Below the pieces are notes generated by a model that made no database searches, was not told the origin of the DNA, and was given only the letters and a program-made list of their open reading frames with translations. Position numbers and translations under genes: made by a program. A stretch of DNA of 64,000 bases, from NCBI GenBank assembly GCA_002269645.1, contig NIVC01000396.1, positions 434,001 to 498,000 on the forward strand, read 5' to 3'. Positions 2,999 through 58,095 of the stretch are shown here, piece by piece. The stretch's first letter is position 1, and each line of letters starts with the position of its first letter. Origin of the DNA: Macrostomum lignano. Taxonomy: Eukaryota.

Positions 2999-3548
2999 GT
3001 CTATGGTGTAGGGAGTGTGTCTATGGTGTAGGAAGTGTGTCTATGGTGTGGGAAGTGTGTCTATGGTGTGGGAAGTGTGTCTATGGTGTGGGAAGTGTGT
3101 CTATGGTGTGGGAAGTGTGTCTATGGTGTGGGAAGGTTGTCTATGGTGTGGGAAGCGTGTCTATGGTGTGGGAAGTGTGTCTATGGTGTGGGAAGTGTGT
3201 CTATGGTGTGGGAAGTGTGTCTATGGTGTGGGAAGTGTGTCTATGGTGTGGGAAGTGTGTCTATGGTGTGGGAAGGTTGTCTATGGTGTAGGAAGTGTGT
3301 CTATGGTGTGGGAAGTGTGTCTATGGTGTGGGAAGTGTGTCTATGGTGTGGGAAGTGTGTCTATGGTGTGAGAAGTGTGTCTATGGTGTGAGAAGTGTGT
3401 CTATGGTGTGGAAAGTGTGTCTATGGTGTAGGGAGTGTGTCTATGGTGTGGGAAGTGTGTCTATGGTGTGGAAAGTGTGTCTATGGTGTAGGAAGTGTGT
3501 CTATGGTGTGGGAAGTGTGTCTATGGTGTGGGAAGTGTGTCTATGGTG
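2999..3548. repeat. 20-bp tandem repeat CTATGGTGTGGGAAGTGTGT
   Basis: About 27 near-identical units. Confidence 0.95.
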
Positions 3549-25100: not shown

Positions 25101-27326
25101 CAGGGCGTCCTCCAGGTGCTGCCGGAAGTATTTGTGATTCAGCGACGTGATCTGCAGCTCGTTAGCCGTCTCGCGGTTCTTCAGCCAGATCTTGCCCTGG
25201 CCCTGCGGGTCGATGAGCAGCGGAAAGCGGCTTGCCTGAGTCACAATGATGCCGTTCTCTGTGCTCAGCTCATCGTTGGGCAGCCCCTGCAGGTTCCACT
25301 CTGCAATGGTGGTCGCCTCTACCAGCATCTCGATGAGGTTGAGCGTATCGCTAGACGGAATCTTGCGCTCTTTCAGGTTCTTCTGCCAGTTCCGGTTCAG
25401 CAGGAGGCGGAAGTCCTGGTTGAACGGTCCAGAGTAGGACAGGAAGGCGGTGGCCATCAGGACGTCGCCAACCAGCCTGCCGATCTGAGCCTTGTACTCC
25501 TTGCTCTGCCGGGTCCAGCGCTCCTTCTCGTCGGCCAGGCCGGTGATCAGCTGCTCGGCGGCGTTCATCTTCCGCCGGCAGGCGGCCGCATCGTCCTCCA
25601 GCGCCTGCTTCTTGCGCATCGCCTCATCGTAGATGGCGCGCGCCTTGGCCAGCTCGGCCTCTTTCTCGTCTAGCGTCTGCTGCGCCGCGGCCAAATCTTC
25701 GTTGGCCTTGTGCAGGCGGACCTCCTGCTTGGCCAGATTGTCCTTCAGCGGCATGACCTCCTTGTTGATCCAGAAGAAGTCCTGCATGGCTTTGGTCCAC
25801 GACAGCAAACCGGCAACGTTGCCGCAGACGCGCTTCGCCGTCTCGAAGTTGTAGTCTTCCATCTCCAGGTAGGGCATGAGGAACTCAATGCTCTCCTCAG
25901 TCATTGAGTCTTTCGAGAAGGTGACCAGCATGTTGAGGAAGCCGGTGTTGGACATGAGCTTGAGCGACTCGGACCAGCTGGGCTTGGCGCAGGGCCGCTC
26001 CGGGTCCTGGGTGACCGTGTCCAGGTGGCGCTGGAACAGCATCAGCACGCAGTCCATGATGCGCATGATGAGGTGCGGCGGTTTGCCCAGCTTCCGTACC
26101 GTCGCAATATCGGCCGGCTTGATGGTGTTCAGCGCCTCCTCGGCCGCCTCCAGGGCCGGGCGGGCGGCCTCCAGCTTGCCTTCGGCGATGGCCTTGTCCT
26201 GCGCGATCGAGTCCACGATGGCCTGAGCTCGATCCTTCACCACCTGCACCTTGTTTTTCACCTCCTGGGCGGCCTGCTGCTGAATAGCCACCTGTTTGAG
26301 CACCTCCTCGGCTTCTCTGTTGGCGATGGCAAGCTCCTTCTCCTTCACAACCAGCTCCTCGCTGAGGACCTTAACGGAATCCTGTGCCTCGAGCAGCTTC
26401 TCAAGACCGCTGTCCATGCGGGCTGCCAGGCCCTGGTAATGCTGCAGCTTGTCCGTGTAGATCTTCTTATAGCCCTGCAGGAAGCTCAGGTAGGACTTCG
26501 GCGTCACGTGCGTGCTGCGCCGGTACCTGTTGAAGTAGTCCACGCAGCTCTCGGCGACGCCGTCGTGCACAACGCCCATGGTCTGGATAAGTTCGTGCTT
26601 GACAGTCTCGGAGCAGACAATCTCGAACTTGGACAGGAAGTGATCAGCCACGGCGACCAGGGCGTCGCGCGGCCAGCGCTGGAACCAGTCCATTGTGCAG
26701 CCGGAGATCAGCGCCGGGAACTTCAGCGCCCGACTACGGAATTTCTCGCCAACCGGAGAGAAGCACAAGACCACGTGCAGGTTCTGGCGCGTGCGGGTCA
26801 GGAAGTACTCTTGCAGGTTCTCGTTAGTTGGTGGCCGTCTGGGAAACTCCTTCTTCATGACACCGATCAGCTCTTGGCAGATCTCGTCCATCTCGTCCCT
26901 GGGGAACAGGTTGGACACTACGCCGGAGGCCAGGACGTTGTTGAGGTACTCCAGGAAGCTCTCATCCTTGATCTCGTTGTCCGTGAACAAGAAGGTGATG
27001 CCCTTGCCCTGCTGGCCGGCGGTTCGGTAGAGGAACTTCAGGTCCTCCATCAGGTTGGACACATTGTACGACCGGGTGAGGGTGATCTGGAAAGTCTTGT
27101 AGCCGGCGATGAAGGAGGCCAGGCGCGTTAGCGACTGCTTGCCGGAGCCGCCGACTCCCACTAGGAGGGCGTTGCCGCGCGGCGTACTGATGATGCGGGA
27201 GATCTTCACCAGGTGCGTCATGGCGTCCTGGAAGAACACCAGGTCCATGCCGGCGCCGCGGATGCTCTCGTTGTACTGGCCCATGAAGTAGCGCAGGCGG
27301 TCGCTCAGGGCCTCGAAAGTTGGGAT
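22149..27326 (-). CDS. DNAH5: Dynein exon 12 (AAA4, stalk/MTBD, AAA5, AAA6, C-terminal domain)
   Basis: 5178-nt open exon from IPTFEAL to LLCDVM-TGA; acceptor CCCACAG. Confidence 0.97.
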
Positions 27327-30300
27327 CTGTGGGCGGAGTGGTGAGTCAGACGGGATCAATTTGTAGGTGAGCTCAGAACTACTCCAAGCTACCTGTCCAA
27401 GCTACCTGTCCAAGCTACCTGTCCAAGCTACCTGTCCAAGCTACCTGTCCAAGCTACCTGTCCAAGCTACCAGTCCAAGCTACCTGTCCAAGCTACCTAT
27501 CCAAGCTACCTGTCCAAGCTACCTGTCCAAGCTACCTGTCCAAGCTACCTGTCCAAGCTACCTGTCCAAGCTACCTGTCCAAGCTACCTGTCCAAGCTAC
27601 CTGTCCAAGCTAACTGTCCAAGCTACCTGTCCAAGCTACCTGTCCAAGCTACCTGTCCAAGCTACCTGTCAAAACTACCTGTCCAAGCTACCTGTCCAAA
27701 CTACCTGTCCAAGCTACCTATTTAAGCTACCTACCATATCTATCTTCATAAAAAGGTGTTTTCACTAAGAAACCACTCAAGACTCGCAAACCCTTGAACC
27801 CAGACAGCCGAAGCTGTCCCGCTCACCGGTTCGTAGATGTGCGGCATCTCGAAGCTGGCATCGTCCGGCTCGTCTCCCGTGGCCTCGGGAGCGTCTCTGG
27901 AAATGGGCGAAATTTGTTCAGAGTTAAAATTTTATAGCATTTTTTTCCTTCCTAGAAACGAGGTTGCGTCTCTCAAGACTTCACAAGATTTCGAAGGCAT
28001 GCAGGACTGTAAGTTAATTTAGATAAAACTGGCTAAATATAATGTTGTTAAAGAGTAATAACTGTGTGTTAATTAGCCGGGTTAAAGTGCTGGTATAATC
28101 ATAGGATAAGATTAATAATAGACTTTAGATAAAACTATTTTGAGCTACCAGCGAACTATCATGGACTCGCGGTAGAGGCATCTCCGGTATGCCCCCCCCC
28201 CCTAAGTGATTTGCACCTGAGAAAGTTGACAAAAAACTCCATCCTATCAATGACGGGGTCAAACAGGTCGCCGAGGTCCTCCTGAACGAGCCGCTTCATG
28301 CTCTTGTCGAACCAGCCGATGTCGGCAAACGTCACGAATCTGCCTCGGATGGGTGGCAGAGGAGCGACTGGTAGCTTCTCCGAATTCCTACCTTCCCCTA
28401 GCAACCATTCCAGCGTAGGCCGCTAGAATTATTGCAGGTTAATCAGTGCATCGAAAGTGTTTAGAAAAATCAAAGGTGCAAAAATTGTGCATAGTTAAGA
28501 GGGGTTTAGCTGAAATAAAATCACTGCAAGTCAGTTGATTAATAAAGGTAAAGGAAAATGTGTCAAGGGTGCAAACAATAAATTGGTGTTTTAATCTGTT
28601 AGCCACAAATCATTTTTCCGGGATTCTAAGACACCAGGACCACCTGAGAAAGTCCACAAAGTAGTGCGTTGGCTCCAGCAGTTTCCCAGCATCATCGCCC
28701 ATGTCCTCCACTAGCACGCGGCTCATGGTCTTCACGAACCAGTTCACGTCGTCATAAGTGGTGAATCTGAGAGTGACAGTCGAATTTCAATTTGAATAGC
28801 AAAGAAAATCAGCGAGTTGGGTTGCAGATTTGGACATCGAAATAAATAACTAGCGGTTACGAAAAACTTAGAAATGAAACTTAAAAAGAAACTTAAAAAA
28901 CAGGAAATGCCAAGGAAGAGGTACAGATACACTCGTAGTCTTACTCAAATCACAGTGTAAGAAGTATTCAATCAGCTGAAATATTAAAAATATGAAAATG
29001 CTGCACCTTTGTTACTTTTTAAAATACTACTAACAGTAGCTAGATAAATCGATTTGACTCTAAAATCATCCTACTAACAGTAGCTAGATGGCTTTATTTT
29101 TTACTTTGAAATCATCCTACTAACAGTAGCTAGATGGCTCTATTTGACTTTAGGATAATCCTACTAACAGTAGCTAGATGGCTCTATTTGACTTTAAGAT
29201 AATCCTACTAACAGTAGCTAGATGGCTCTATTTGACTTTAAGATAATCCTACTAGCAGTAGCTAGATGGCTCTATTTGACTTTAAGATAATCCTACTAGC
29301 AGTAGCTAGATGGCTCTATTTGACTTTAAGATAATCCTACTAACAGTAGCTAGATGGTTCTATTTGACTTTAAGATAATCCTACTAACAGTAGCTAGATG
29401 GCTCTATTTGACTTTAAGATAATCCTACTAACAGCAAGCATTCATTTCAATGTTCACCGCGCGCTCACCTGTCGGAGATGACTCGGCAGCACTCGTGCTT
29501 CCACAGGCTGAGCAGCACGCTGGAGTCCTTGACCACCTCGCTGACGGTGTTGATCATGCCTTGCCAGATCCGGCTGAGATCCCGCAGGTTAAACACGTAG
29601 TGGAATTTGGCCGGGGTCGGCAGCATCTTCATCTTGGTGAGCTGCCACAGGCGCCTGGTCAGCGGCACCAGCTTGGCCACCATAGCGCGCACCTCCTCGG
29701 GGAAGCCGCGCTCCTCGCAGTAGTGACCGCAGCCGATGACGCTGAAGATCTTGTCGATGCTCGGGTTGGACGGCAGCGTGCAGTTGAAGATGTTGAACTG
29801 GCGCTTCAGCCGCTGCGGGATGTCGTTTCGGCCGCCGCCGGGGTGGATCATGGCGGCCATGAACTGCATGTCCACGATGGTGGTGAAGTCTCCCGGCTTC
29901 TCCAGGTTGTAGAAGCCAGAGTTCTCCATCAGCTGGCGGACGATCTCGTTGGCGATCTGGTCGCCCCACTCGTTGATAACCGGCATGTTGATGTCGTCGA
30001 TGAAGACGGTCATCTTGCGGCCGGCCGGCGGGCCGAAGGTCGAGCCCATGCGCTTGTCCACGTAGCTCTCAATGGTCCGCTGGAACATCATCGGCGTGGT
30101 GGCGCTGGAGAAGTTGAGCGCCTTGTTCATGTGCTCCTCCGGGTTGAACTTGGCCAGGAATTTGTTGATCATGACGGTCTTGGCCGTGCCCTGCTCACCG
30201 ATCAGCAGCACCTGCTTCTCCTGCTTGTGAATGGTGTGGATGAGGAACTCGGTGCGCACGTTGTCCACATTGGGCACCAGGATGGAGCCGTACTCGGGGG

Positions 30301-33300
30301 TGCTGTCGGTCGGGTAGAGGAACTCCTCCACCTTCTCGTCCCAGTGCTGCCACTCGCCGGACTCTCCAACGAGGAAGTCGAACATGGTGTTGTCGGAGTC
30401 GGCTGCATACTCGGGCAGGTCCAGCTTCAGCTCCCGCATCTGCGTCTCGAGCTTGTTGCGGTCCTCCCACTCCAGCAGCGCGCCCACCGACCACATGATG
30501 GTGAACACGTACAGCCTGCGGTAGAACTCGGGCCTAAGCGCGCCCTCCTTCTCCTCGCGCTTCGGGATCAGGCCTTCGAGCAGGTCGCAGCATTGTCGCA
30601 CGATGAACGCCTCGAGGACGTCAATCTTGAAGGTGAGGAATTGAATAGCATAGCGAAGGATCTCCGGGAAGGTGCTCTCGAACAGCGGGAACAGCTGGTC
30701 GCGCTCAAATGTTGGCCTCTTGAGCAGCCAGCCGCTGAGCAGGGGGTTCCAGTTGAGCCCAGAGCTGGACATGTACACCATGCCGTTGCGGGACACTGTG
30801 GCAGGCGACGCATTGTCGATGTTGTGCACCTCGAAGATGATCTTGCAGTTCGGCGCCATGGGGATTCGATCGCCGTTAGCCAGAGTCAGCGTCTTGTTGT
30901 CGTCCAGCACGGAGTTGAGGTTCTCGATCCAGATGGCGTCCACGGGGCCGTCCAGCACCAGCCAGATGTGCTCGCCCTTCTTGGCCTTGAGGGTGCGGCG
31001 CCACAGCGTGGAGAAGATGCCGTCAGTCCAGTCGTTGGTGGCCACGTCTAGCCGGCCGAACATCTGCGGCGCCGTGATGGCCTTCGGGTTCATGCGGAGC
31101 TCGCGGTGCGGCTCGCCGCAGTCCGTCAAGGCCTTCATCAGTGTGTGGATGCAGCGGGTCTTGCCGGCTCCGGAGGGGCCCAGCGTCATCATACCGTGAC
31201 GCACGCGCTGCGTCTCAAAAAGCTGAATGAGCTTCAGGTTCCAGGAGTCCCAGTTGATGAGCTCCGCCTCCTGCACCTGCTTGGCGATGGCGGCCTCTAG
31301 CTGCGGGTAGCCCGCCTTGTCCAGCGTGATGCCTGCGGGTTACAAAGTTCATCTTGATCTTTACTTTATTCTGCAAATAATATTGTCTACGTTGTTTCAA
31401 TCCGCTTATACGCTCGTACCTGGGAAAAGATCATTAATAAGCGACAGGAACAGCGGCTCGTCCTGGTCCACCAGCTTGGACAAGTTCATGTCGCGCAGCA
31501 CTCGCATGACGGTCGTCTGCTCGCTGTCGTTCGGGTTGGAGCGTTTCACAGTGCCCAGGGTGCGCAGCACGGACAAAATGTTGCGCAGGCCGAAGTCGTA
31601 GTGCACCTGAAATTAGTAGAAATTGGAATAGCGATAGGAGCAGCATCAGGAGTAGGGTCAGGAGCAAGAGCAGGAGTGGAGCAGGAGTGGAGCAAGAGCA
31701 GGAGTGGAGCAGGAGTGGAGCAAGAGCAGGAGTGGAGCAGGAGTGGAGCAAGAGCAGGAGTGGAGCAGGAGTGGAGCAAGAGCAGGAGTGGAGCAGGAGT
31801 GGAGCAAGAGCAGGAGTGGAGCAGGAGTGGAGCAAGAGCAGGAGTGGAGCAGGAGTGGAGCAGGAGTGGAGCAGGAGTAGAGCAGGAGCAGGAGTGGAGC
31901 AGGAGTAGAGCAGGAGCAGGAGTGGAGCAGGAGTGGAGCAAGAGCAGGAGTGGAGCAGGAGTGGAGCAAGAGCAGGAGTGGAGCAGGAGTGGAGCAGGAG
32001 TGGAGCAGGAGTGGAGCAGGAGCAGGAGTGGAGCAGGAGTGGAGCAGGAGCAGGAGTGGAGCAGGAGCAGGAGCAGGAGTGGAGCAGGAGTAGAGCAGGA
32101 GCAGGAGTGGAGCAAGAGCAGGAGTGGAGCAGGAGACGGTCTCTAAAACCGCTCACCTGCTTGGTTAGCTGCTCCTCGCACAGCTTGTACAAAGTGAAGA
32201 ACTTCCTGGCGAGGGTGATGTTGTCGAGGAAGCCGACCGAGGCCAGCTTGACGCGGATGATGATCTGCCTGTCGGGCACCATCATGGCCACGGTGCGGAA
32301 GTTGATCTTCAGATTCTCCGGCAGCTCCTGACGTCCAGCGTAGCCGGGGTTCATCGTGAGGAAGATGCCGAACTCCGGGTTCATCTCGACCAGGTCGCCG
32401 TCAGTGAAGATGAACTGCTTCTTGCGCTCCTTCTTGCAGGAGAGCACGATGGCGATCTGCTGAGCCGCCACGGACAGCACAGGCAGCTCGATGCGGTTGA
32501 ACTCGTCGAAGCAGCCCCAGCTGCCGGACTGGGCCAGGCCCTGGAAGGAACGACAGGTGTTAATCCGATTAGTTCTGGCGACAGTCGACTAGCAGCCCAG
32601 AGCGAACTACACCTTGGGGAAACAGGCCCTGTTTTCATCGTTCTAGCCATGGCTCTTGTCCTACTACAGCTAAATAAGTGCTTGAATGCGGATCTTTTTG
32701 ATAACTTCAAACAAATAATCGTTAACAATAACTGATTACACCTGCCCTAGTTGGGCCAGATATGCAACCGACAGCTCAGCCGCAGCTATTGCGCGATACA
32801 TCTGAAGGCTGCGTACGGCTGTTCAGTCCAAGGACTGGGGGGTCGCCACACACACTCTCCATTACCCCAGCTAATGCTGGCACCCATTTTACAGCTGGGA
32901 GAACTGAACCAATTCAGAGTTAAGTATCTTGCTCAAGGACACAAATTGTTTCAGTGGGATCGGGAATCGAACCCCGGACCTTCAAGTTGTGAGTCCGACG
33001 CTCTAACCACTACGCTACAACCCCCTGGTTGTACAACGTGTTTGAATCGGTTCCCCCAGTCTTGAGAGCTCTCTCATTGGCTGAGGCAAGGTTCATTTCA
33101 ACAGTTACGTCGTAGGGTTGATCATTAGGCAGGGTTGACCAGCTTACCTTGTAGATTCTGCCCAGACCGCGGAAGTCCATCTGGTCGGAGCAGTTGAACA
33201 CCACGACGTACTTGCCGAGGCAGCGGCCCATGTCTTTGACGGTCTCCGTCTTTCCCGTACCGGCGGGCCCGGCCGGGGCGCCGCCCATGGACATTCCCAG

Positions 33301-42300: not shown

Positions 42301-45175
42301 GCTACCAATCCCCTCAGGATGCTACCAATACCTTCAGGGTGCTACCAATCCCCTCAGGATGCTACCAATACCTTCAGGATGCTACCAATCCCCTCAGGAT
42401 GCTACCAATACCTTCAGGGTGCTACCAATCCCCTCAGGATGCTACCAATCCCTTCAGGATGCTACTAATCCCTTCAGGATGCTACCAATCCCCTCAGGAT
42501 GCTACCAATACCTTCAGGGTGCTACCAATCCCCTCAGGATGCTACCAATACCTTCAGGATGCTATCAATCCCCTCAGGATGCTACCAATCCCTTCAGGGT
42601 GCTACCAATCCCCTCGGGATGCTACCAATCCCCCCAGGATGCTACCAATCTCCTCGGGATGCTACCAATCCCCTCAGGATGCTACCAATCCTTCAGATAC
42701 GCTCGTAGCTAAAACTCGCCTCCCTCTAAAAGTCCCATTTAAGCCCACCAGGGGACAAGGGAAACTTTATGAAAAATTTAAAAAGCAGAAACGGAAGCTT
42801 ATGCAAGGATGCTTTGCAATGCTATCAAAATTAATTACCTGCACTCTTTGCGGTGCATAAGAATTAAGGGGTGATTAAAAATAAACAATTGGCATTGAAT
42901 TATTAAGCTTGCGGGGTTGGGTGAAAGCGCTCTTGACTATATATATTTAGAAATGTGAGCATAATACGTATTAAGCGATAATATTGAGTTTTAAGTGACT
43001 ATATGTATGCGGTAAATAGGCAGCGTGACCTGACGTGACCTATTCAGCCTCAAAAATACCTGTAGAATAAAATTCGGCGGTCCCGACCGGCTTTCGGTGC
43101 GACCTGTTCTGACGCGGCTCTGGGGTAGCAGTTTGTTTTTATTTCATGAGCGTTTGAATTGGTGCACTAACTTTTTGTTATAATCTTTGAGACGAGATGA
43201 AGGGTAACAGTATTCACTGAGGATCTGAAGGAAAGTCCCTGAAGTTAAGTGGAAAAAACCCCGAGCTGCAGGCTTACGGGCCTCCCTATCCAGGTCGGGC
43301 TCCTGGTAGTGCACGAAAATCTTGCATGGCCCGTCAGCAGCGAAGAACTGCTCCATCTGGTCAACGCTGTTGCCATCAAGGATGCCGTCTTCGACCTCGG
43401 CTCGGTCCAGGCAGTAGAAGTCGGCCACCTGGTCCAGCAGGTGCCGGTGCCGGTCATCCAGCTGGTTCCGCTTGGCCTCGCGTTCCTCTTTCAATTTTTG
43501 CTGCATTGAATTCGGTTGGATGAACAAATATTAAAGCTACGTTCGTATTGTTGCATCGAAAACATACAAAAAATGATTAAAATATGCTGCACAAAATGTG
43601 GGAATTTGTTCTAGTTTCACTTTATTAGGCTCAAAGTGCTTCAGCTATTCAAGTAGCGCTTGGCCACCAGAGAAATTCACACAACGAAACGAAAAAAACT
43701 TCAGAAAATCGGTCAAAGTGAACTAACTTTACGAAGAAGCATGTTGCTAGGTCAATCCATAAAATGCTGTGCATGCTGTAGATTGACCCGACTTCGGTGT
43801 GAAATTTTACCTTGTATTATTTTGTCTTTAAGCAGTCAGCCATTTATAAATGCTGCGAGGCATGGAGGAACGGCCACCCGCACTGCCCGTTGACCCTCAG
43901 GCGCCACCCAGGCGCAGCTGCAAGTCTGCCACACGGTTTCCAATAGCAACGCGGCAGCTTGACGGCTAATTAGAATGCTTTAGTCAAAACTCTTGAGGCA
44001 TGAAGCTGTGCAGAGAGAAAAGCGAAAGTAATGCAGCTGTGCAGGTCTGGTAGGAGAGTCACAGATTGACAGGTGTTGAGCTGCGGGGGTGGGGCTTGGA
44101 CAAATAAGTGAAGTTTTTCTCGCAGATCGGCAGAGTATTCGCAAATTCCAAGCAAGAAAGAATTAACAAAAACTTCACGTACGAGTAAAACGATGCACTG
44201 AGGGTTGGCTTTGAAAAATCATTTTCGTCACCACGAATTTTGGCCCTTTTAGATTCGTGTGAAAAAATGCGTTTTAGTTGTAAAAAAATCTTGAACTGTA
44301 CAAGAAGAAAATAATATTTAGTTTTAAATTTCCAAAGCAATTATTTCTGAAAATTGCATTTTATCGGGGCTTTGGGCATTGAAATTAACCTTAATTCCCG
44401 TTTCAGTAATTAAGATAATATGTCTTAGAATAAACAATATAATAAAATAAAAAACACTGAATTTGGGGTTAAAATGTAAAAATTTAAAAGAAATTTAAGC
44501 ATAAAAATTCTATTCGATTGAAAATGTTACAATACGTTTTAGCTTCAGCAGTTTCACAGAAGAAAAGTGTTCATAGAAAAAGCAAAAAATCGGTTAATAA
44601 ATTTGCTTTGATTATCATTTGCTTTGTATTTTCTTTAACTTTTCTTCCAGTCATTTGAGCTTTTTTGCTATATTTAACCAAATGCTACTACCATTCCTGT
44701 GTCTAACCTTGATTCCTTCAAATTATAAAATGGAATTTAATTAAAATATGCAAGATACCTGACTAAGACATAAATCTAAGGCGTACTATAATTAGCAATT
44801 GCGTTATACAAGAGTACATATGCAGAAACTGTGTTAGACCTAAAGAATATTTAATTTCGAAGTTTCCTCGGTCATCACCTGATAATACTGAATCGTCTAC
44901 GGCTACGCGCTCATGTTGTTTCAACACTATCGATTTGGCAGTAACAAAAATTGCAGAAATCATTTTTAAAATATTTTTTAAATACTTCATTTCTTAAAGA
45001 ATATTTAAATAGAAAATGTAGTAAAATAAATAAACCCTGAAAAGTGAATTCAAAATTATTCATTTCAGCTCACCTGTTTTTCCTTTATATTTTCTCCGCT
45101 AGTCAAAACTGAAACACGTGCCTTGCTCTTCTGGGCACTGTTTGAGCGCCTTCCTTGCTCTGGGTCACCAGGCAT
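22149..45175 (-). CDS. DNAH5: Axonemal outer-arm dynein heavy chain, DNAH5/DNAH8 (gamma heavy chain) type, whole multi-exon gene, about 4640 aa
   Basis: Exons join with GT-AG sites and compatible phases once one missing base near 37430 is allowed. P-loops GPAGTGKT (AAA1), GPSGAGKT (AAA2), GEQGTAKT (AAA3), GVGGSGKQS (AAA4); CFDEFNRI Walker B; coiled-coil stalk; C-terminus [15 protein letters not shown]-terminus [17 protein letters not shown] resembles DNAH5/8 as recalled. DNAH5 versus DNAH8 orthology cannot be resolved by eye. Confidence 0.95.
27378..27733. repeat. 13-bp tandem repeat CCAAGCTACCTGT (dynein intron 11)
   Basis: About 27 units. Confidence 0.96.
27827..27896 (-). CDS. DNAH5: Dynein exon 11 (70 nt)
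   Basis: (R)[23 protein letters not shown]; acceptor TTTCCAG, donor GTGAGC, phase 2/0. Confidence 0.92.
28217..28339 (-). CDS. DNAH5: Dynein exon 10b (123-nt paralog of 10a; putative mutually exclusive exon)
   Basis: [40 protein letters not shown]; acceptor GGCAG, donor GTGC; same length and phase as 10a, 16/40 identical residues, no stops. Confidence 0.78.
28644..28766 (-). CDS. DNAH5: Dynein exon 10a (123 nt; alternative to 10b)
   Basis: [40 protein letters not shown]; acceptor CTCTCAG, donor GTGG, phase 2/2. Confidence 0.9.
29020..29432. repeat. 44-bp tandem repeat (dynein intron 9)
   Basis: TAATCCTACTAACAGTAGCTAGATGGCTCTATTTGACTTTAAGA, about 9 units. Confidence 0.95.
29469..31332 (-). 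CDS. DNAH5: Dynein exon 9 (AAA2-AAA3)
   Basis: [52 protein letters not shown]; phase 1/2. Confidence 0.96.
31420..31606 (-). CDS. DNAH5: Dynein exon 8
   Basis: [18 protein letters not shown]...LINDLFP; acceptor TTTCAG, donor GTACG, phase 0/1. Confidence 0.95.
31636..32135. repeat. GGAGTGGAGCA/GGAGCA composite minisatellite (dynein intron 7)
   Basis: Direct inspection. Confidence 0.95.
32157..32540 (-). CDS. DNAH5: Dynein exon 7 (AAA1)
   Basis: [17 protein letters not shown]...[17 protein letters not shown]...EQLTKQ; 384 nt, phase 0/0. Confidence 0.96.
32740..33024 (-). mobile_element. tRNA-derived CORE-type SINE in dynein intron 6
   Basis: A box TAGCGTAGTGG, B box GGTTCGATTCC, then GTGTCCTTGAGCAAGATACTTAAC...CAGCTGTAAAATGGG, resembling the MIR/CORE domain. 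Confidence 0.8.
33148..37592 (-). CDS. DNAH5: Dynein exon 6 (tail, linker, start of AAA1); contains a 1-nt frameshift near 37430
   Basis: ORFs 37257-37574 and 33010-37317 are two frames of one exon; ends [15 protein letters not shown]...GLGRIYK/GTAAG. Confidence 0.95.
37640..38085. repeat. Degenerate TTGGGTCATAGACAG repeats (dynein intron 5)
   Basis: Several diverged copies on both sides of a unique core. Confidence 0.7.
38122..38790 (-). CDS. DNAH5: Dynein exon 5
   Basis: [26 protein letters not shown]...[24 protein letters not shown]; 669 nt, phase 0/0. Confidence 0.95.
40255..40550. repeat. (GAGAG)n microsatellite (dynein intron 4)
   Basis: Direct inspection. Confidence 0.97.
40631..40971 (-). 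CDS. DNAH5: Dynein exon 4 (start of N-terminal tail region 1)
   Basis: [30 protein letters not shown]; acceptor CTACCAG, donor GTGAGC, phase 1/0. Confidence 0.93.
40975..41560. repeat. 20-bp repeat GAGTGCCAAGGATGAT(A/G)G(A/G)A (dynein intron 3)
   Basis: Fills almost the whole intron. Confidence 0.95.
41595..41939 (-). CDS. DNAH5: Dynein exon 3
   Basis: KPRIFVSDG...EVNFLSIDG...[13 protein letters not shown]; acceptor CTCCCAG, donor GTGAGT, phase 1/1. Confidence 0.9.
42000..42695. repeat. 20-bp repeat GCTACCAATCCC(C/T)TCAGGAT (dynein intron 2)
   Basis: About 34 units. Confidence 0.96.
43278..43500 (-). CDS. DNAH5: Dynein exon 2
   Basis: [22 protein letters not shown]...[10 protein letters not shown]; acceptor TGCAG, donor GTAAGC phase 1. 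Confidence 0.85.
43936..43950. promoter_or_regulatory. RFX X-box candidate in dynein intron 1
   Basis: GTTTCC-AAT-AGCAAC, about 430 nt upstream of an in-frame ATG at 43506. Confidence 0.5.
45074..45175 (-). CDS. DNAH5: Dynein exon 1 (putative), [34 protein letters not shown]
   Basis: AAAAATG start, 34 open codons, CAG/GTGAG phase-0 donor matching the phase-0 acceptor at 43500; X-box about 125 nt upstream. Confidence 0.6.
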
Positions 45176-51269: not shown

Positions 51270-54066
51270 CTTCCTCTATGCTTCTCTGCCTCCCTTCTTT
51301 CTTTTATCTCTCATGTCTCTCCCCCTCCTGTCTCTCCCTCTCCTGTGAGAGCCCCTCCTGTCTCTCCCTCTCCTGTCTCTCCCCCTCCTGTCTCTCCCTC
51401 TCCTATCTCCTCTCTCCTGTCTCTCCCCCTCCTGTCTCTCCCTCTCCTGTCTCCCTCTCCTGTATTCGCTTCTCAAGTCTCCCCCTCTCCTGTCTCCACC
51501 TCTCCAGCCTCCCCCTCTCCTGTCCCCCCTCTCCTCTCTCCTCTCTCCTGTCTCTCCCTCTCCTGTCTCCCTCTCCTGTATTCCCTTCTCAAGTCTCCCC
51601 CTCTCCTGTCTCCACCTCTCCAGCCTCCCCCTCTCCTGTCCCCCCTCTCCTCTCTCCTCTCTCCTGTCTCTCCCTCTCCAGCCTCCCCCTCTCCTGTCTC
51701 CCCCTCTCCTGCTCCCCCTCTCCTGTCTTCCCTTCTCTCTCCCCTCTCCTGTCTCCCCCTCTCCAGCCTCCCCCTCTCCTGTCTCCTCTCTCCTGTCTCT
51801 CCCCTCTCCTGTCCCCTCTCCCTGTCTCCCCTCTCCTGTTTCCTCTCTCCTGTCTCCCCCTCTCCAGCCTCCCCCTCTCCTGTCTCCTCTCTCCTGTCTC
51901 TCCCCTCTCCTGTCCCCTCTCTCCTGTCTCCCCCCCTCCTGTCTCTCCCTCTCCTATCTCTTCTCTCCTGTCTCTCCCCCTCCTGTCTCTCCCTCTCCTG
52001 TCTCCCTCTCCTGTATTCCCTTCTCAAGTCTCCCCCTCTCCTGTCTCCACCTCTCCAGCCTCCCCCTCTCCTGTCCCCCTCTCTCTCTCCTCTCTCCTGT
52101 CTCTCCCTCTCCTGTCTCCCTCTCCTGTATTCCCTTCTCAAGTCTCCCCCTCTCCTGTCTCCACCTCTCCAGCCTCCCCCTCTCCTGTCCCCCCTCTCCT
52201 CTCTCCTCTCTCCTGTCTCTCCCTCTCCAGCCTCCCCTCTCCTGTCTCCCCCTCTCCTGCTCCCCCTCTCCTGTCTTCCCTTCTCTCTCCCCTCTCCTGT
52301 CTCCCCCTCTCCAGCCTCCCCCTCTCCTGTCTCCTCTCTCCTGTCTCTCCCCTCTCCTGTCCCCTCTCTCCTGTCTCCCCCTCTCCTGTCTCCTCTCTCC
52401 TGTCTCCCCCTCTCCAGCCTCCCCCTCTCCTGTCTCCTCTCTCCTGTCTCTCCCCTCTCCTGTCCCCTCTCTCCTGTCTCCCCCTCTCCTGTCTCCTCTC
52501 TCCTGTCTCCCCCTCTCCTGTCTCCTCTCTCCTGTCTCCCCCTCTCCTGTCTTCCCCTCTTCTCTCTCCCCTCTCCTGTCTCCCCCTCTCCTGACTCCTC
52601 TCTCCTGTCTCTCCCTCTTCTGTCCCCCCTCTCCTGTCTCCCCCTCTCCTGCTCCCCCTCTCCTGTCTTCCCCTCTTCTCTCTCCCCTCTCCAGCCTCCC
52701 CCTCTCCTGTCTCTCCCTCTTCTGTCCCCCCTCTGCTGTCTTCCCCTCTTCTCTCTCCCCTCTTCTCTCTCCCCTCTCCAGCCTCCCCCTCTCCTGTCTC
52801 TCCCTCTTCTGTCCCCCCTCTCCTATCTTCCCCTCTTCTCTCTCCCCTCTCCTGTCTCCCCCTCTCCAGCCTCCCCCTCTCCTGTCTCCTCTCTCCTGTC
52901 TCTCCCCTCTCCTGTCTCCTCTCTCCTGTCTCCCCCTCTCCTGTCTCCTCTCTCCTGTCTCCCCCTCTCCTGTCTCCCTCTCTCCTGTCTCTTCTCTCCT
53001 GTCTCCCCCTCTCCTGTCTCCCCCTCTCCTGTCTTCCCCTCTTCTCTCTCCCCTCTCCTGTCTTCCCCTCTTTTGTCTCCCCTCTCCTGTCTCTCCCTCT
53101 TCTGTCCCCCCTCTCCTATCTTCCCCTCTTCTCTCTCCCCTCTCCTGTCTCCCCCTCTCCAGCCTCCCCCTCTCCTGTCTCCTCTCTCCTGTCTCTCCCC
53201 TCTCCTGTCTCCTCTCTCCTGTCTCCCCCTCTCCTGTCTCCTCTCTCCTGTCTCCCCCTCTCCTGTCTCCCCCTCTCCTGTCTCTTCTCTCCTGTCTCCC
53301 CCTCTCCTGTCTCCCCCTCTCCTGTCTTCCCCTCTTCTCTCTCCCCTCTCCTGTCTTCCCCTCTTTTGTCTCCCCTCTCCTGTCTCTCCCTCTTCTGTCC
53401 CCCCTCTCCTGTCTCCCCTCTCCAGCCTCCCCCTCTCCTGTCTCCCCTCTCCAGCCTCCCCCTCTCCTGTCTTCCCCTCTTTTGTCTCCCCTCTCCTGTC
53501 TCTCCCTCTCCTGTCTCCCCCTCTCCAGCCTCCCCCTCTCCTGTCTCCCCCTCTCCAGCCTCCCCCTCTCCTGTCTCCCCTCTCCAGCCTCCCCCTCTCC
53601 TGTCTCCCCCTCTCCAGCCTCCCCCTCTCCTGTCTCCTCCTATTTCTCCCTCTCTCCAGCCTCCCTCTCTCCAGCCTCCCCCTCTCCTGTCTCCTCCTAT
53701 TTCTCCCTCTCCTGTCTCCTCCTATTTCTCCCTCTCCTGTCTCCTCCTATTTCTCCCTCTCCTGTCTCCTCCTATTTCTCCCTCTCCTGTCTCCTCCTAT
53801 TTCTCCCTCTCCTGTCTCCTCCTATTTCTCCCTCTCCTGTCTCCTCCTATTTCTCCCTCTCCTGTCTCCTCCTATTTCTCCCTCTCCTGTCTCCTCCTAT
53901 TTCTCCCTCTCCTGTCTCCTCCTATTTCTCCCTCTCCTGTCTCCTCCTATTTCTCCCTCTCCTGTCTCCTCCTATTTTTCCCTCTCCTGTCTCCTCCTAT
54001 TTCTCCCTCTCCTGTCTCCTCCTATTTCTCCCTCTCCTGTCTCCTCCTATTTCCCCCTCTCCTGTG
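51270..54066. repeat. Polypyrimidine minisatellite (CTCTCCTGTC/CCAGCCTCCCC), ending in a 25-bp array
   Basis: Direct inspection. Confidence 0.95.
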
Positions 54067-54844
54067 TCCCCTGTGTGCATTTCTGAGAAGTGGAAACTTC
54101 AATGGAACAGCTACTTGGCACTCTGCCAAAACAACGCAGTCTGGTTTGCTTTGCACAGTCCAACACCCCAAGTGCACCGAATCTCGCCGTATCTTCAATT
54201 TCCTTAATAAGAGAGCGCCGAAGCCGCCGAGCTGCGAAGTCCGCCCGCGCCCACCCAGCCAGCAGGGCCAGAAATTGGCCTAAATTGCATGGACTGGTGG
54301 ACTGGTGAAGGGTGGAAGGAGGCGGGAGTGGGCGCCAGGCAGCCCTGTGACACGAAATGATGCCTTCTAAGCAAGTCCCTCAGTTCCTATAGATGCAGCC
54401 CACTCTCTATATCTATACATCATGTATGCACAGAGCGGAAACGAAGTTGCCTGACTGTATCTGGGGGACGGTCAGTAGCCAGTGGAGCTCTCTCGGGTCA
54501 GCTAACTGGCTAGTTTGCAAGTCTCTGGCCTGGCGCCTTCTCGCTCCCCCGGCCCTCTCTTTCTCTCCTCTCGTGTTTTTCTCTGAGTGGGATAAGCCTG
54601 GTGTACACAGTACTGACTGATGCGAAGTGTACGTACGCGAAGTGCGTGTTGTAGGAAAAACCAGCGCTGTGCAGAAAAAGCTTTTTGCGGAGAGTGGGGT
54701 GGGTTAGGCCAGATTTACAGGCAAAGCGAGTTAAGTAAAATGCGCTTCACCTTGCAGAATATTGATGTGCACTTCGCTTCTCGCCTCCTATTGCGGAGTT
54801 ACGATTCCATTCTAATCAAGCGCAAACCTTAGAGCACAAAATCT

Positions 54845-56685
54845 AATCTTATTTAGACTGATCCAATCTTATCTAGACTGATCCAATCTCATTTAGACTG
54901 ATCCAATCTTATCTAGACTGATCCAATCTTATCTAGACTGATCCAATCTCATTTAGACTGATCCAATCTTATCTAGACTGATCCAATCTTATCTAGACTG
55001 ATCCAATCTCATTTAGACTGATCCAATCTTATCTAGACTGATCCAATCTTATCTAGACTGATCCAATCTCATTTAGACTGATCCAATCTTATCTAGACTG
55101 ATCCAATCTTATCTAGACTGATCCAATCTCATTTAGACTGATCCAGTCTCATCTAGACTGATCCAATCTTATCTAGACTGATCCAATCTTATCTAGACTG
55201 ATCCAATCTCATCTAAACTGATCCAATCTCATCTAGACTGATCCAATCTTATCTAGTCTGATCCAATCTCATCTAGCCTGATCCAATCTCATCTAGACCG
55301 ATCCAATCTCATCTAGACTGATCCAATCTCATCTAGCCTGATCTAATCTCATCTAGCCCGATCCAATCTCATCTAGACTGATCCAATCTCATCTAGCCTG
55401 ATCTAATCTCATCTAGCCCGATCCAATCTTATCTAGACTGATCCAATCTTATCTAGACTGATCCAATCTCATTTAGACTGATCCAATCTTATCTAGACTG
55501 ATCCAATCTTATCTAGACTGATCCAATCTCATTTAGACTGATCCAGTCTCATCTAGACTGATCCAATCTTATCTAGACTGATCCAATCTTATCTAGACTG
55601 ATCCAATCTCATCTAAACTGATCCAATCTCATCTAGACTGATCCAATCTTATCTAGTCTGATCCAATCTCATCTAGCCTGATCCAATCTCATCTAGACCG
55701 ATCCAATCTCATCTAGACTGATCCAATCTCATCTAGCCTGATCTAATCTCATCTAGCCCGATCCAATCTCATCTAGACTGATCCAATCTCATCTAGCCCG
55801 ATCCAATCTCATCTAGACTGATTCAATCTCATCTAGCCCGATCCAATCTCATCTAGCCTGATCCAGTCTCATCTAGACTGATCCAGTCTCATCTAGACTG
55901 ATCCAATCTCATTTAAACTGATCCAGTCTCATCTAGCTTGATCCAATCTCATCTAAACTGATCCAGTCTCATCTAGACTGATGCAATCTCATCTAGACTG
56001 ACCCAATCTCATCTAGACTGATGCAATCTCATCTAGACTGATCTAATCTCATCTAGCCCGATCCAATCTCATCTAGACTGATCCAATCTCATCTAGCCCG
56101 ATCCAATCTCATCTAGACTGATTCAATCTCATCTAGCCCGATCCAATCTCATCTAGCCTGATCCAGTCTCATCTAGACTGATCCAGTCTCATCTAGACTG
56201 ATCCAATCTCATTTAAACTGATCCAGTCTCATCTAGCTTGATCCAATCTCATCTAAACTGATCCAGTCTCATCTAGACTGATGCAATCTCATCTAGACTG
56301 ACCCAATCTCATCTAGACTGATGCAATCTCATCTAGACTGACCCAATCTCATCTAGACTGATGCAATCTCATCTAGACTGATCCAGTCTCATCTAGACTG
56401 ATCCAATCTCATCTAGCCTGATCCAATCTCATCTAGACTGATCCAATCTTATCAAGACCGATCCAATCTCATCTAGACTGACCCAATCTCATCTAGCCTG
56501 ATCCAATCTAATCTAGACTGACCCAATCTCATCTGGACTGATCCAGTCTCATCTAGACTGATCCAATCTCATCTAGCCTGATCCAATCTCATCTAGACCG
56601 ATCCAATCTCATCTAGACTGACCCAATTTCATCTAGCCTGACCCAATCTCATCTAGTCTGATCCAATCTCATCTAGCCTGATCCA
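54845..56685. repeat. 20-bp satellite ATCCAATCTCATCTAGACTG; the same family recurs at 59290-59458 and 61493-62047
   Basis: About 90 units. Confidence 0.97.
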
Positions 56686-56753
56686 GTGGCGGTGTGAACT
56701 CCTTGAGACAAAGGAATGACATCTACAGTTACAACAACCGCCATCTCCCGCAG

Positions 56754-57443
56754 TGAGCACCCTCAGGACCGTGAAGGCCGTGCTGAACTGCTTCTCAGGG
56801 CCGCTGAACGGCTCAGCGGTGTGCCGCCTGCTGACGGACCCGAGCCTGCACCGGATCAGCGAATACTTCAATGTTGAGTACTTCAGGGAGCCGAAGATCG
56901 GCGACCGGTGCATCAGCGACGCCGGCACTCGGGAGCGCCTGGACTCCGGCAGCGGCCGCGTCGGCTCGAAATTCGCCGCTTTCAATGCCGAGAAAGGCCA
57001 CCTGCACGTGATGTCGCTGACTGAGGAGGACGCTCGGTTCTGCTACCGGGCCAACATCACCCTGACCGACTCGGTCGGGCGCGTGGTCTACTGGAACGTG
57101 TCGGAGTCGCGTGAAGTCCGCGTCATAGTCGACCCGTCATCGGGGAGGCTGGTCAGCAGGGAGGCCACCCGGTCTGAGGCCGCCTACGAGCTCAGGGCGG
57201 GCGGCCTGCAACTCGCGCTGCCCTGCTATGCCCGCAGCACCAGCCACGGCGGCGGCTATCAGTGGCGTCGGAACGGCGCCCCGGTGGAGGTCGGCGATCC
57301 TGGCGAGGCGCATCGCAAATTCGCCTACCTGAACGTCAACTCCGGCAGTCTGCGACTGCGCGTTGACGGCTGGAACGATTCGGGCGAGTACGAGTGCAGG
57401 CACAATGACCGGACATTGCTCACCATCGGCCTGCAGTTCTACA
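56754..57443 (+). CDS. Dscam: Dscam-like exon, Ig2 and Ig3
   Basis: NGSAVCRLL, GHLHVMSLTEED, LALPC...YQWRRNG...DSGEYEC; acceptor CCCGCAG, donor GTGAGC, phase 1/1. Confidence 0.85.
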
Positions 57444-57454
57444 GTGAGCAGCTA

Positions 57455-58095
<641 letters not shown>

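Follow-up and report, generated by a model that had tools for sequence, protein, structure and literature searches.

Cilia owe the frequency and power of their beat to outer-arm dynein, in whose motor AAA3 serves as a regulatory ATPase site. What is known of its adaptation to sperm flagella, epidermal cilia and excretory cilia in one organism comes mostly from paralogues that are whole-gene duplicates. Here we analyse a stretch of 64,000 nucleotides (nt) of Macrostomum lignano contig NIVC01000396.1, referred to as the window, which carries on its minus strand a dynein heavy chain gene of the DNAH5/DNAH8 type (22149–43506). Within this gene, two adjacent homologous exons, 10a and 10b, encode two versions of one short segment of the motor, and it is the nature of this pair, which we read as a probable case of alternative exons, that concerns us here.

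The gene was delimited from stop-free stretches and their translations and extends from a likely ATG at 43506–43504 to a stop codon at 22149–22151. Sequence comparison confirms it as a DNAH5/DNAH8-type outer-arm dynein heavy chain gene. When the C-terminal 1996 residues of the predicted protein were searched against the sequences of solved structures (PDB), the best match was human DNAH5 (8j07_n0; 3318 bits) and the second, at 3198 bits, chain I3 (4730 aa) of entry 9fqr, a bovine sperm axoneme, followed by the Chlamydomonas gamma chain (1970 bits) and Tetrahymena Dyh3/alpha (1639 bits); among the other classes, DNAH9 reached 1241 bits, DNAH17 1195 bits and the inner-arm chains at most 1365 bits. 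Chain I3 is probably DNAH8, to judge from its length, its entry and the DNAH17 chain in the same entry; in the sequence file it is labelled ‘Cilia and flagella associated protein 57’, and the molecule names there appear to be shifted. From orthology, the product would be located in the axonemal outer arm, and in Kollmar’s scheme the gene belongs to class DHC3 (PMC5100056), the outer-arm ‘gamma’ class. The nearest named proteins share 65–70% identity with it in the conserved flanks. A protein search with the tail region gave at best 56% identity over most of the query, with short partial matches of up to 68%, and a query spanning the tandem exons retrieved 604 homologues, none of them from the window organism or a near relative of it; the best are 75–79% identical in the flanks.

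Coding and non-coding parts differ sharply in composition, with a GC content at third codon positions (GC3) of 0.89–0.92 in the exons of the gene versus a total GC content of 0.34–0.42 in the introns. The N-terminal exon is presumably part of the same gene, to judge from its resemblance to the N terminus of DNAH5. For an animal DNAH5 orthologue the gene is extremely intron-poor; individual exons reach about 4.5, 1.9 and 5.2 kb, and the small exons 10a, 10b and 11 lie at one of its few intron-bearing spots.

The exon pair and the element that it encodes

Exon numbers follow the preliminary description of this stretch, and all features of the gene are given on the minus strand. Exon 9 (29469–31332) encodes the region from the AAA2 lid to AAA3, including a GEQGTAKT P-loop, and ends with ...CCRVISD plus AG in phase 2, written at 29469 as ...TCC GAC AG|gtgagc, in which gtgagc is a strong donor. 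It is followed by intron 9 (28767–29468; 702 nt, GC 0.34), which carries a 44-nt minisatellite of 9.3 copies at 29023–29434, and then by exon 10a (28644–28766; cag|ATTCACC...TTTCTCAG|gtggtc), an intron of 304 nt (28340–28643; GC 0.42), exon 10b (28217–28339; cag|ATTCGTG...TTTCTCAG|gtgcaa) and an intron of 320 nt (27897–28216; GC 0.38). The gtggtc donor of 10a and the gtgcaa donor of 10b are both weak, and in 10b the bases GAGGC lie between the pyrimidine tract of the acceptor and the AG. Exon 11 (27827–27896; 70 nt, cag|AGACGC...GAACCG|gtgagc) again has a strong donor. Intron 11 (27327–27826; 500 nt), with a 13-nt minisatellite of 27 copies at 27383–27732, separates it from exon 12 (22149–27326), whose 5.2 kb encode the AAA4 P-loop, the stalk, AAA5, AAA6 and the C terminus and include the stop codon.

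Exons 10a and 10b are each 123 nt long and in phase 2/2. The sole open frame of both is the continuation of exon 9, with stops in the two other frames; no further exon lies between them, and they share their flanking exons within one gene. Their peptides are identical at 16 of 40 positions, or at 18 of 42 when the split Arg codons are counted, and their DNA at 73 of 123 nt (41% different). The coordinates, lengths, phases, AG/GT sites and peptides given in the preliminary description were all reproduced, and its statement that joint inclusion of the two exons keeps the frame holds, with an Arg at every junction. The same is true of all four possible combinations (9-10a-11, 9-10b-11, both exons and neither). 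The predicted junctions that distinguish them are CATCTCCGACAG|ATTCACCACTTATG for 9|10a, CATCTCCGACAG|ATTCGTGACGTTTG for 9|10b, GGACTTTCTCAG|AGACGCTCCCGA for 10a|11, CAACTTTCTCAG|AGACGCTCCCGA for 10b|11, GGACTTTCTCAG|ATTCGTGACGTT for 10a|10b and CATCTCCGACAG|AGACGCTCCCGA for 9|11.

When the peptides of all exons were compared with the window using tblastn, 10a and 10b matched each other (E = 5e-8) and no second copy of any other exon was found. A six-frame search of the 64 kb with a profile of the segment likewise gave two matches only, 10a (61.7 bits) and 10b (47.3 bits). Tandem repeats occur throughout the window and can confuse assemblers, which raises the question of whether the pair might be an artefact of assembly or of haplotypes, or 10b a chance open frame. 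We consider this extremely unlikely: the copies differ in their DNA to the extent given above, have unique sequence between them and splice sites of their own, resemble each other at an E value far from chance, and occur in the same arrangement in eight independent assemblies.

The segment had been placed between the AAA3 and AAA4 motifs in the preliminary description, and the positions of the Pfam matches agree with this. Their order around the exon is AAA_lid_1, DYN_lid and AAA_8, with the P-loops of AAA3 and AAA4 present. Without the exon, the AAA_lid_1 match stops at profile position 72 (57.6 bits); 10a extends it to position 88 (62.3 bits) and 10b to position 97 (66.8 bits). The segment thus corresponds to about positions 73–97 of AAA_lid_1, and AAA_8, which represents AAA4, begins about 50 residues past it. 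Its counterpart in the DNAH5 chain of 8J07 is at about residues 2833–2875.

Modelling of both variants had also been suggested. AlphaFold2 models of a 348-residue stretch, one per exon variant, predict the same secondary structure from 10a and 10b, with a mean predicted local distance difference test score (pLDDT) of 79.6 and 80.4 for the two isoforms and values over the exon of 85–95 for 10a and 77–98 for 10b. Both contain a long helix at residues 150–168 (the DxxWF...EDxG part), a short helix, spanning 170–174 in one and 170–177 in the other, a loop, and a strand (YFVDF/FFVNF) that pairs with the HIYEP strand encoded by exon 11. The 10b model superposes in all columns on solved axonemal and cytoplasmic dynein motors, with template modelling (TM) scores of 0.72–0.80. 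Such models lean on a shared alignment and speak for compatibility with the fold, not for function. As modelled, each of the two exons encodes the last long helix of the AAA3 lid, a short helix, a loop and the strand that leads into AAA4. The cores of the helix and the strand are alike in 10a and 10b, and the bulk of the differences is concentrated in the 11-residue stretch from helix to strand, where not one residue is identical and where the family alignment, too, is at its most variable.

Constraint on the two copies and recurrence in relatives

To describe the segment across the family, we used a profile of 42 columns built from 119 homologous segments (119 of the 120 proteins retrieved cover it). 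Both exons align to the family without gaps. Exon 10a scores 63.4 bits, close to the family median of 64.6, and is up to 64% identical to orthologous exons. Exon 10b retains seven of the eight near-invariant positions of the family (F2, D7, W10, F11, F37, V38 and F40), compared with an agreement between 10a and 10b of only 28% elsewhere (binomial P = 8e-4), and the positions that the two exons share coincide with the low-entropy columns of the family (permutation P = 1.3e-4). GC3 is 0.75 in 10a and 0.80 in 10b, and 0.89 ± 0.06 in the other large exons of the gene. We also simulated neutral decay of copies of 10a towards an intron-like composition, with 3000 trials at each level of divergence; the proportion of copies that were still open and scored at least 50.6 bits, the score of 10b, was 0.4%, 0.03%, 0% and 0% at 15, 20, 30 and 41% divergence, respectively. 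A direct comparison of non-synonymous with synonymous change (dN/dS) between 10a and 10b is uninformative because synonymous sites are saturated (dS 1.06, dN 0.53).

We take these comparisons to mean that, for most if not all of its history, 10b has been evolving as a sequence that codes for this dynein element. Judged by the profile and the identities, 10a is the canonical copy and 10b the divergent one, in our reading a fast-evolved, specialised version. Long-term selection on both copies, as proposed in the preliminary description, is borne out by the conserved residues, by GC3, by the neutral simulations and by the constraint found in relatives.

The relatives came from metagenome contigs, which were scanned with the isoform-A peptide to give 80 loci with DNAH5-type genes and then searched in six frames with the profile. 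At least two full-length copies of the exon are present at 11 of the 80 loci, which represent 8 distinct sequences: L013, L015, L022, L026, L042, L045 and L056 have two copies and L051 has three, at 1850–1975, 2293–2418 and 3370–3498, all open and with AG/GT sites. The exon copies of the remaining loci, L023, L025 and L041, are identical to those of L022 and have the same spacing. In all eight sequences the copies lie on the same strand after the tail of exon 9, are bounded as ag|N...AG|gt and are in phase 2/2, and exon 11 follows them in all five loci whose contig reaches that far. The copies in relatives measure 123 or 126 nt (across nine loci, with the window counted, 126 nt in two), and the introns between them 85–1141 nt. 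At other loci a single copy is present, either fused to exon 9 (for example, L001 and L003–L006), as a separate exon (L007, L011, L016, L035 and L049) or, in the group L063–L082, split by an extra intron.

Among L022, L026 and L042, the first copies are 64–71% and the second copies 55–69% identical between species, compared with only 38–52% between the first and the second copy inside one species. The copies are more alike across species than within one, which dates the duplication to before the separation of these species. Between L013 and L015, the second copies are 90% and the first copies 52% identical. For both copies, the proportion of synonymous differences between orthologous copies (pS) is 0.70–0.94 and that of non-synonymous differences (pN) 0.21–0.31, with a pN of 0.07 for the second copies of L013 and L015; where dS was computable, dN/dS is 0.07–0.13. 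A second copy and its dN/dS in related species had been named in the preliminary description as the comparative test of the pair, and the outcome is that the pair recurs and that both copies are constrained where orthologous copies could be compared. These values support both copies being functional in L022, L026, L042, L013 and L015.

The history of the pair appears to include losses. A rough neighbour-joining tree based on the exons on either side places the window beside L022, L026 and L056, all of which have two copies, and the two-copy loci L013 and L015 among the single-copy loci L016, L001 and L003. This position of L013 and L015 implies that some lineages have lost the alternative exon and that L001 and L003 lost the intron along with it. 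The single copy is fused to exon 9 at both of the latter (L001, 10256–10684; L003, 1764–2192), and the flank tree groups both with the two-copy L013 (7738–8518), which L001 matches at 94% identity where AAA4 begins. The arrangement suggests that intron and alternative exon disappeared together at these two loci.

By profile score, it is the leading copy that is divergent in L013, L015 and L056, and the second copy in the window, L022, L026, L042 and L045. This difference in copy order between clades hints at more than one origin, a matter that 42 residues are too few to settle. Mini-profiles made from the second copies of L022, L026 and L042 gave 10b +0.7 bits, 10a −9 bits and other sequences −2 to −29 bits, which is suggestive at most of 10b being orthologous to the second copy of that clade.

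What weighs against 10b as a working exon is its divergence. Its profile score of 50.6 bits lies in the lowest 5% of orthologs, within their range (minimum 45.5 bits); its best identity to any ortholog is 48%, leaving it with no close counterpart; a protein search with 10b alone found no protein that shares even three 5-residue words with it; and the near-invariant Asp of FVDFL is replaced by Asn, a change also present as FVNFL in a few orthologs. Furthermore, 10b has no established ortholog among the nearest second copies, so that their conservation supports it only indirectly.

A rival reading is that 10b is a silent relic, a formerly working exon that is now unspliced, or spliced at noise level, and has not yet decayed. 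The family score, lower than that of 10a (50.6 versus 63.4 bits), the D>N change and the failure to detect an ortholog would all fit such a relic, as would the purines between the pyrimidine tract of 10b and its AG and the weak donor gtgcaa; and loss does occur, given that L001, L003 and L016, close relatives of the two-copy L013, have no second copy. Even so, we regard a relic as unlikely. The frame of 10b is open, its length is exact and both of its splice sites are intact; its GC3 of 0.80 stands out within an AT-rich intron and seven of the eight invariant residues are retained. The neutral simulation gives P ≤ 0.004 even if a divergence of only 15% is placed on 10b, and any silencing would therefore have to be very recent.

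Nor is the weakness of the donor a sign of death, since it is common to all 19 duplicated exons, the canonical ones included. A G at donor position +5 occurs in 0 of the 19 duplicated exons of the nine loci, compared with 11 of 13 donors of the flanking exons 9 and 11 (Fisher P = 6e-7, and 8e-6 with the window left out). Systematically weak donors are what would be expected of regulated alternative exons.

Splice signals and the proposed choice between the exons

We propose that 10a and 10b are, with good probability, functional tandem-duplicated alternative exons of the substitution type in the organism's single DNAH5/DNAH8-type gene and that they are probably mutually exclusive. Either exon would supply the same AAA3-lid and strand element, such that one gene could give rise to two heavy-chain isoforms; in this proposal, we infer the splicing-in of 10b, the use of one exon per mRNA and cell-type specificity. 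The likely effect of the exchange would be a tuned AAA3–AAA4 block or an altered lid surface. A parallel may be found in the alternative exons that tune insect muscle myosin and in the separate outer-arm dynein heavy-chain genes that serve different vertebrate cilia. Each of the 119 homologous proteins, spliced or intron-less, that span the segment has it once, and it is from this, together with the constant length of the copies and the structural argument that the strand pairs with exon 11, that exclusivity is derived.

The two exons might instead be used together, with 10b as an optional cassette after a constitutive 10a or with both constitutive, and some or all proteins would then contain the helix–loop–strand element twice. 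Such co-inclusion would be in keeping with the frame and the Arg preserved at every junction, with an intron between the exons that, at 304 nt, is spliceable, and with the fact that no mechanism of exclusivity was found. We nevertheless judge it quite improbable. The segment is present once in 119 of 119 homologues covering it. Among 1.84 billion representatives, 0 of 301 profile matches contained two such stretches, a weak argument given that the matches are mostly short open-reading-frame fragments and include no full-length dynein. Equal copy lengths, as found in nine loci, are expected for substitution and unnecessary for insertion, and L051 has three copies. In the structure models, moreover, the exon contributes a strand that pairs with exon 11 and a helix that closes the AAA3 lid, and a second copy placed in series would be left without a partner.

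Several observations count against the pair being alternative and mutually exclusive exons. The protein and contig collections searched contain no transcript or isoform pair from the window organism or from a two-copy species. Steric exclusion does not apply, given the 304-nt intron between the exons (85–1141 nt in relatives), and the splice sites examined include no U12-type sites. Since 123 nt is 3 × 41 and the frame is kept, nonsense-mediated decay cannot remove the products of co-inclusion or of double skipping. RNA duplex energies between whole introns never exceeded those of shuffled controls, and the one donor-masking pairing that emerged was found post hoc, is significant for 10b only and is not repeated in the relatives tested.

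That pairing involves the element UUUGCACCUUUGA (28470–28482) in the intron between 10a and 10b, which has a near-copy at 28563–28575; both are complementary to the 10b donor. Inside the element, UUUGCACCU (28474–28482) is a perfect 9-nt complement of the donor AG|GUGCAAA (P = 0.03 versus shuffles), and UUUGCACCUUUGA shares bases with a 10-nt stretch that is complementary to a site in intron 9. By pairing with either the 10b donor or intron 9, UUUGCACCUUUGA might constitute a two-state RNA switch. G-runs near weak donors act as splicing enhancers in other systems, and a run of 11 G (28192–28202, minus strand), situated 15 nt downstream of the weak 10b donor, is by analogy a possible intronic splicing enhancer for it.

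We rejected a further pairing as a splice model. The element AAGCUACCAGUC (28366–28377, minus strand) lies 27–38 nt before the 10b acceptor and complements the 13-nt repeat unit of the minisatellite in intron 11, with one exact and 20 one-mismatch complements, all of them in that array, compared with 0.42 expected by chance; in such a pairing exon 11, too, would be looped out. Minisatellites abound in the window, with 43 rows from Tandem Repeats Finder, periods of 4–176 nt and an array in nearly every intron or intergenic stretch, and complementarity between introns is therefore easy to over-read. Further arrays lie at 51308–54071, 54841–56685 and 16156–17372.

Relation to known systems and other features of the window

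The mechanism that we propose is well known, tandem mutually exclusive exons having been described in insect Mhc, in Dscam and in human genes; what appears to be new is the site in an axonemal chain and its recurrence. In the literature searched, of which our coverage is incomplete, neither the AAA3 lid nor any axonemal heavy chain is described as having such a pair. The preliminary description knew of no earlier report, and for an axonemal chain and for this site we found none either; a pair of this kind has, however, already been predicted in the cytoplasmic chain DHC1 of Schistosoma mansoni. In that report (Pillmann et al., PMC3228551), the pair is a predicted mutually exclusive one that, like the pair in the window, consists of tandem, homologous exons of equal length with split codons in mid-gene, with exclusivity deduced from the single copy in family alignments. 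That case concerns a cytoplasmic chain of class 1 in one species, whereas the window pair belongs to an axonemal chain of class 3, lies in the AAA3 lid and recurs in at least nine genomes.

Comparison with the vertebrate paralogues is instructive. DNAH5, used in airway and other motile cilia, and DNAH8, used in sperm, are, like the window gene, members of class DHC3 (PMC5100056) and represent a specialisation by axoneme that the exon pair may also provide; they are whole-gene duplicates, whereas the window has an exon pair. The same survey attributes duplicates of outer-arm genes to specialisation by life cycle and cell type and mentions, with no details, alternative splice forms in dynein motor domains (PMC5100056). 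The analogy with DNAH5 and DNAH8 drawn in the preliminary description is reasonable as a functional parallel, but the exons cannot be matched one to one with the paralogues. We considered 10a and 10b as counterparts of DNAH8 and DNAH5 and rejected the idea: DNAH5 fits the peptides of both isoforms alike (261.1 and 262.9 bits), and the DNAH8-like chain scores 246.3 bits with the 10a isoform and 233.0 bits with the 10b isoform.

Arthropod Mhc clusters (PMC2257972, PMC3228551) likewise generate motor-domain variants from one motor gene by the exchange of homologous exons, in place of a gene family. They belong to another motor family, and their isoform use and kinetic effects are proven experimentally, whereas those of the window pair are proposed. 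Human substitution events derived from tandem exon duplication (PMC8373072, PMC9741552) similarly involve neighbouring exons that are homologous, equal in length and phase, ancient, conserved and functionally important; the texts searched on these events name no dynein heavy chain (PMC5740500). The Dscam, 14-3-3zeta and Mhc clusters have docking-site/selector RNA structures (PMC6071210), and the intronic element of the window could in like manner pair with the 10b donor or the intron-9 site. Unlike in those systems (PMC6071210), the pairing in the window spans 9–10 bp, was found post hoc at P ~0.03, is not conserved and shows no excess duplex energy.

In the outer arms of Tetrahymena, the small subdomains of AAA3 in the beta and gamma chains form grooves into which the linker of the neighbouring chain docks (PMC8500839); these grooves belong to the beta and gamma rings and not to a chain of the DNAH5 type, but they suggest that the surface of the lid may matter. 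Limited to about 40 residues of the AAA3 lid, a conserved exon swap would single out a small, defined part of the surface of the motor ring as a place where evolution tunes the motor, and the pair would offer two natural variants for structural comparison. Its recurrence in at least eight further genomes makes it more than the curiosity of a single genome. For annotation, gene predictors would tend to drop one of the exons or to join both, and such a pair is easily overlooked in coding sequences of 14 kb.

A more far-reaching proposal is that the AAA3-lid exon is a recurrent hot spot of diversification, multiplied to two or three copies and retained by selection in several animal lineages, perhaps with several origins, that exon swapping is how invertebrates achieve this and that an RNA switch operates in the window. 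Taken jointly, these claims are tentative and, in our estimate, rather doubtful. If they were true, a single gene would give many invertebrates the outer-arm motors specific to cell types for which vertebrates rely on separate genes.

Outside the exon pair, the window contains some minor features. On the plus strand, 59987–60876 holds open frames of 163 and 127 codons with an ordinary amino-acid composition and no Pfam match, which may be the relic of a transposon. In the intron after the 4.5-kb exon of the dynein gene, a tRNA match from Rfam at 32955–33024 on the minus strand (33.8 bits, with a gathering score of 29; E = 0.003) may be a tRNA-derived relic, and ARAGORN predicted no tRNA anywhere in the window. 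Finally, an open frame of 309 codons at 56720–57646 on the plus strand, with a GC3 of 0.75 and a sub-threshold match to Ig_3 (24.1 bits, cut-off 30), may be an exon of a neighbouring gene.

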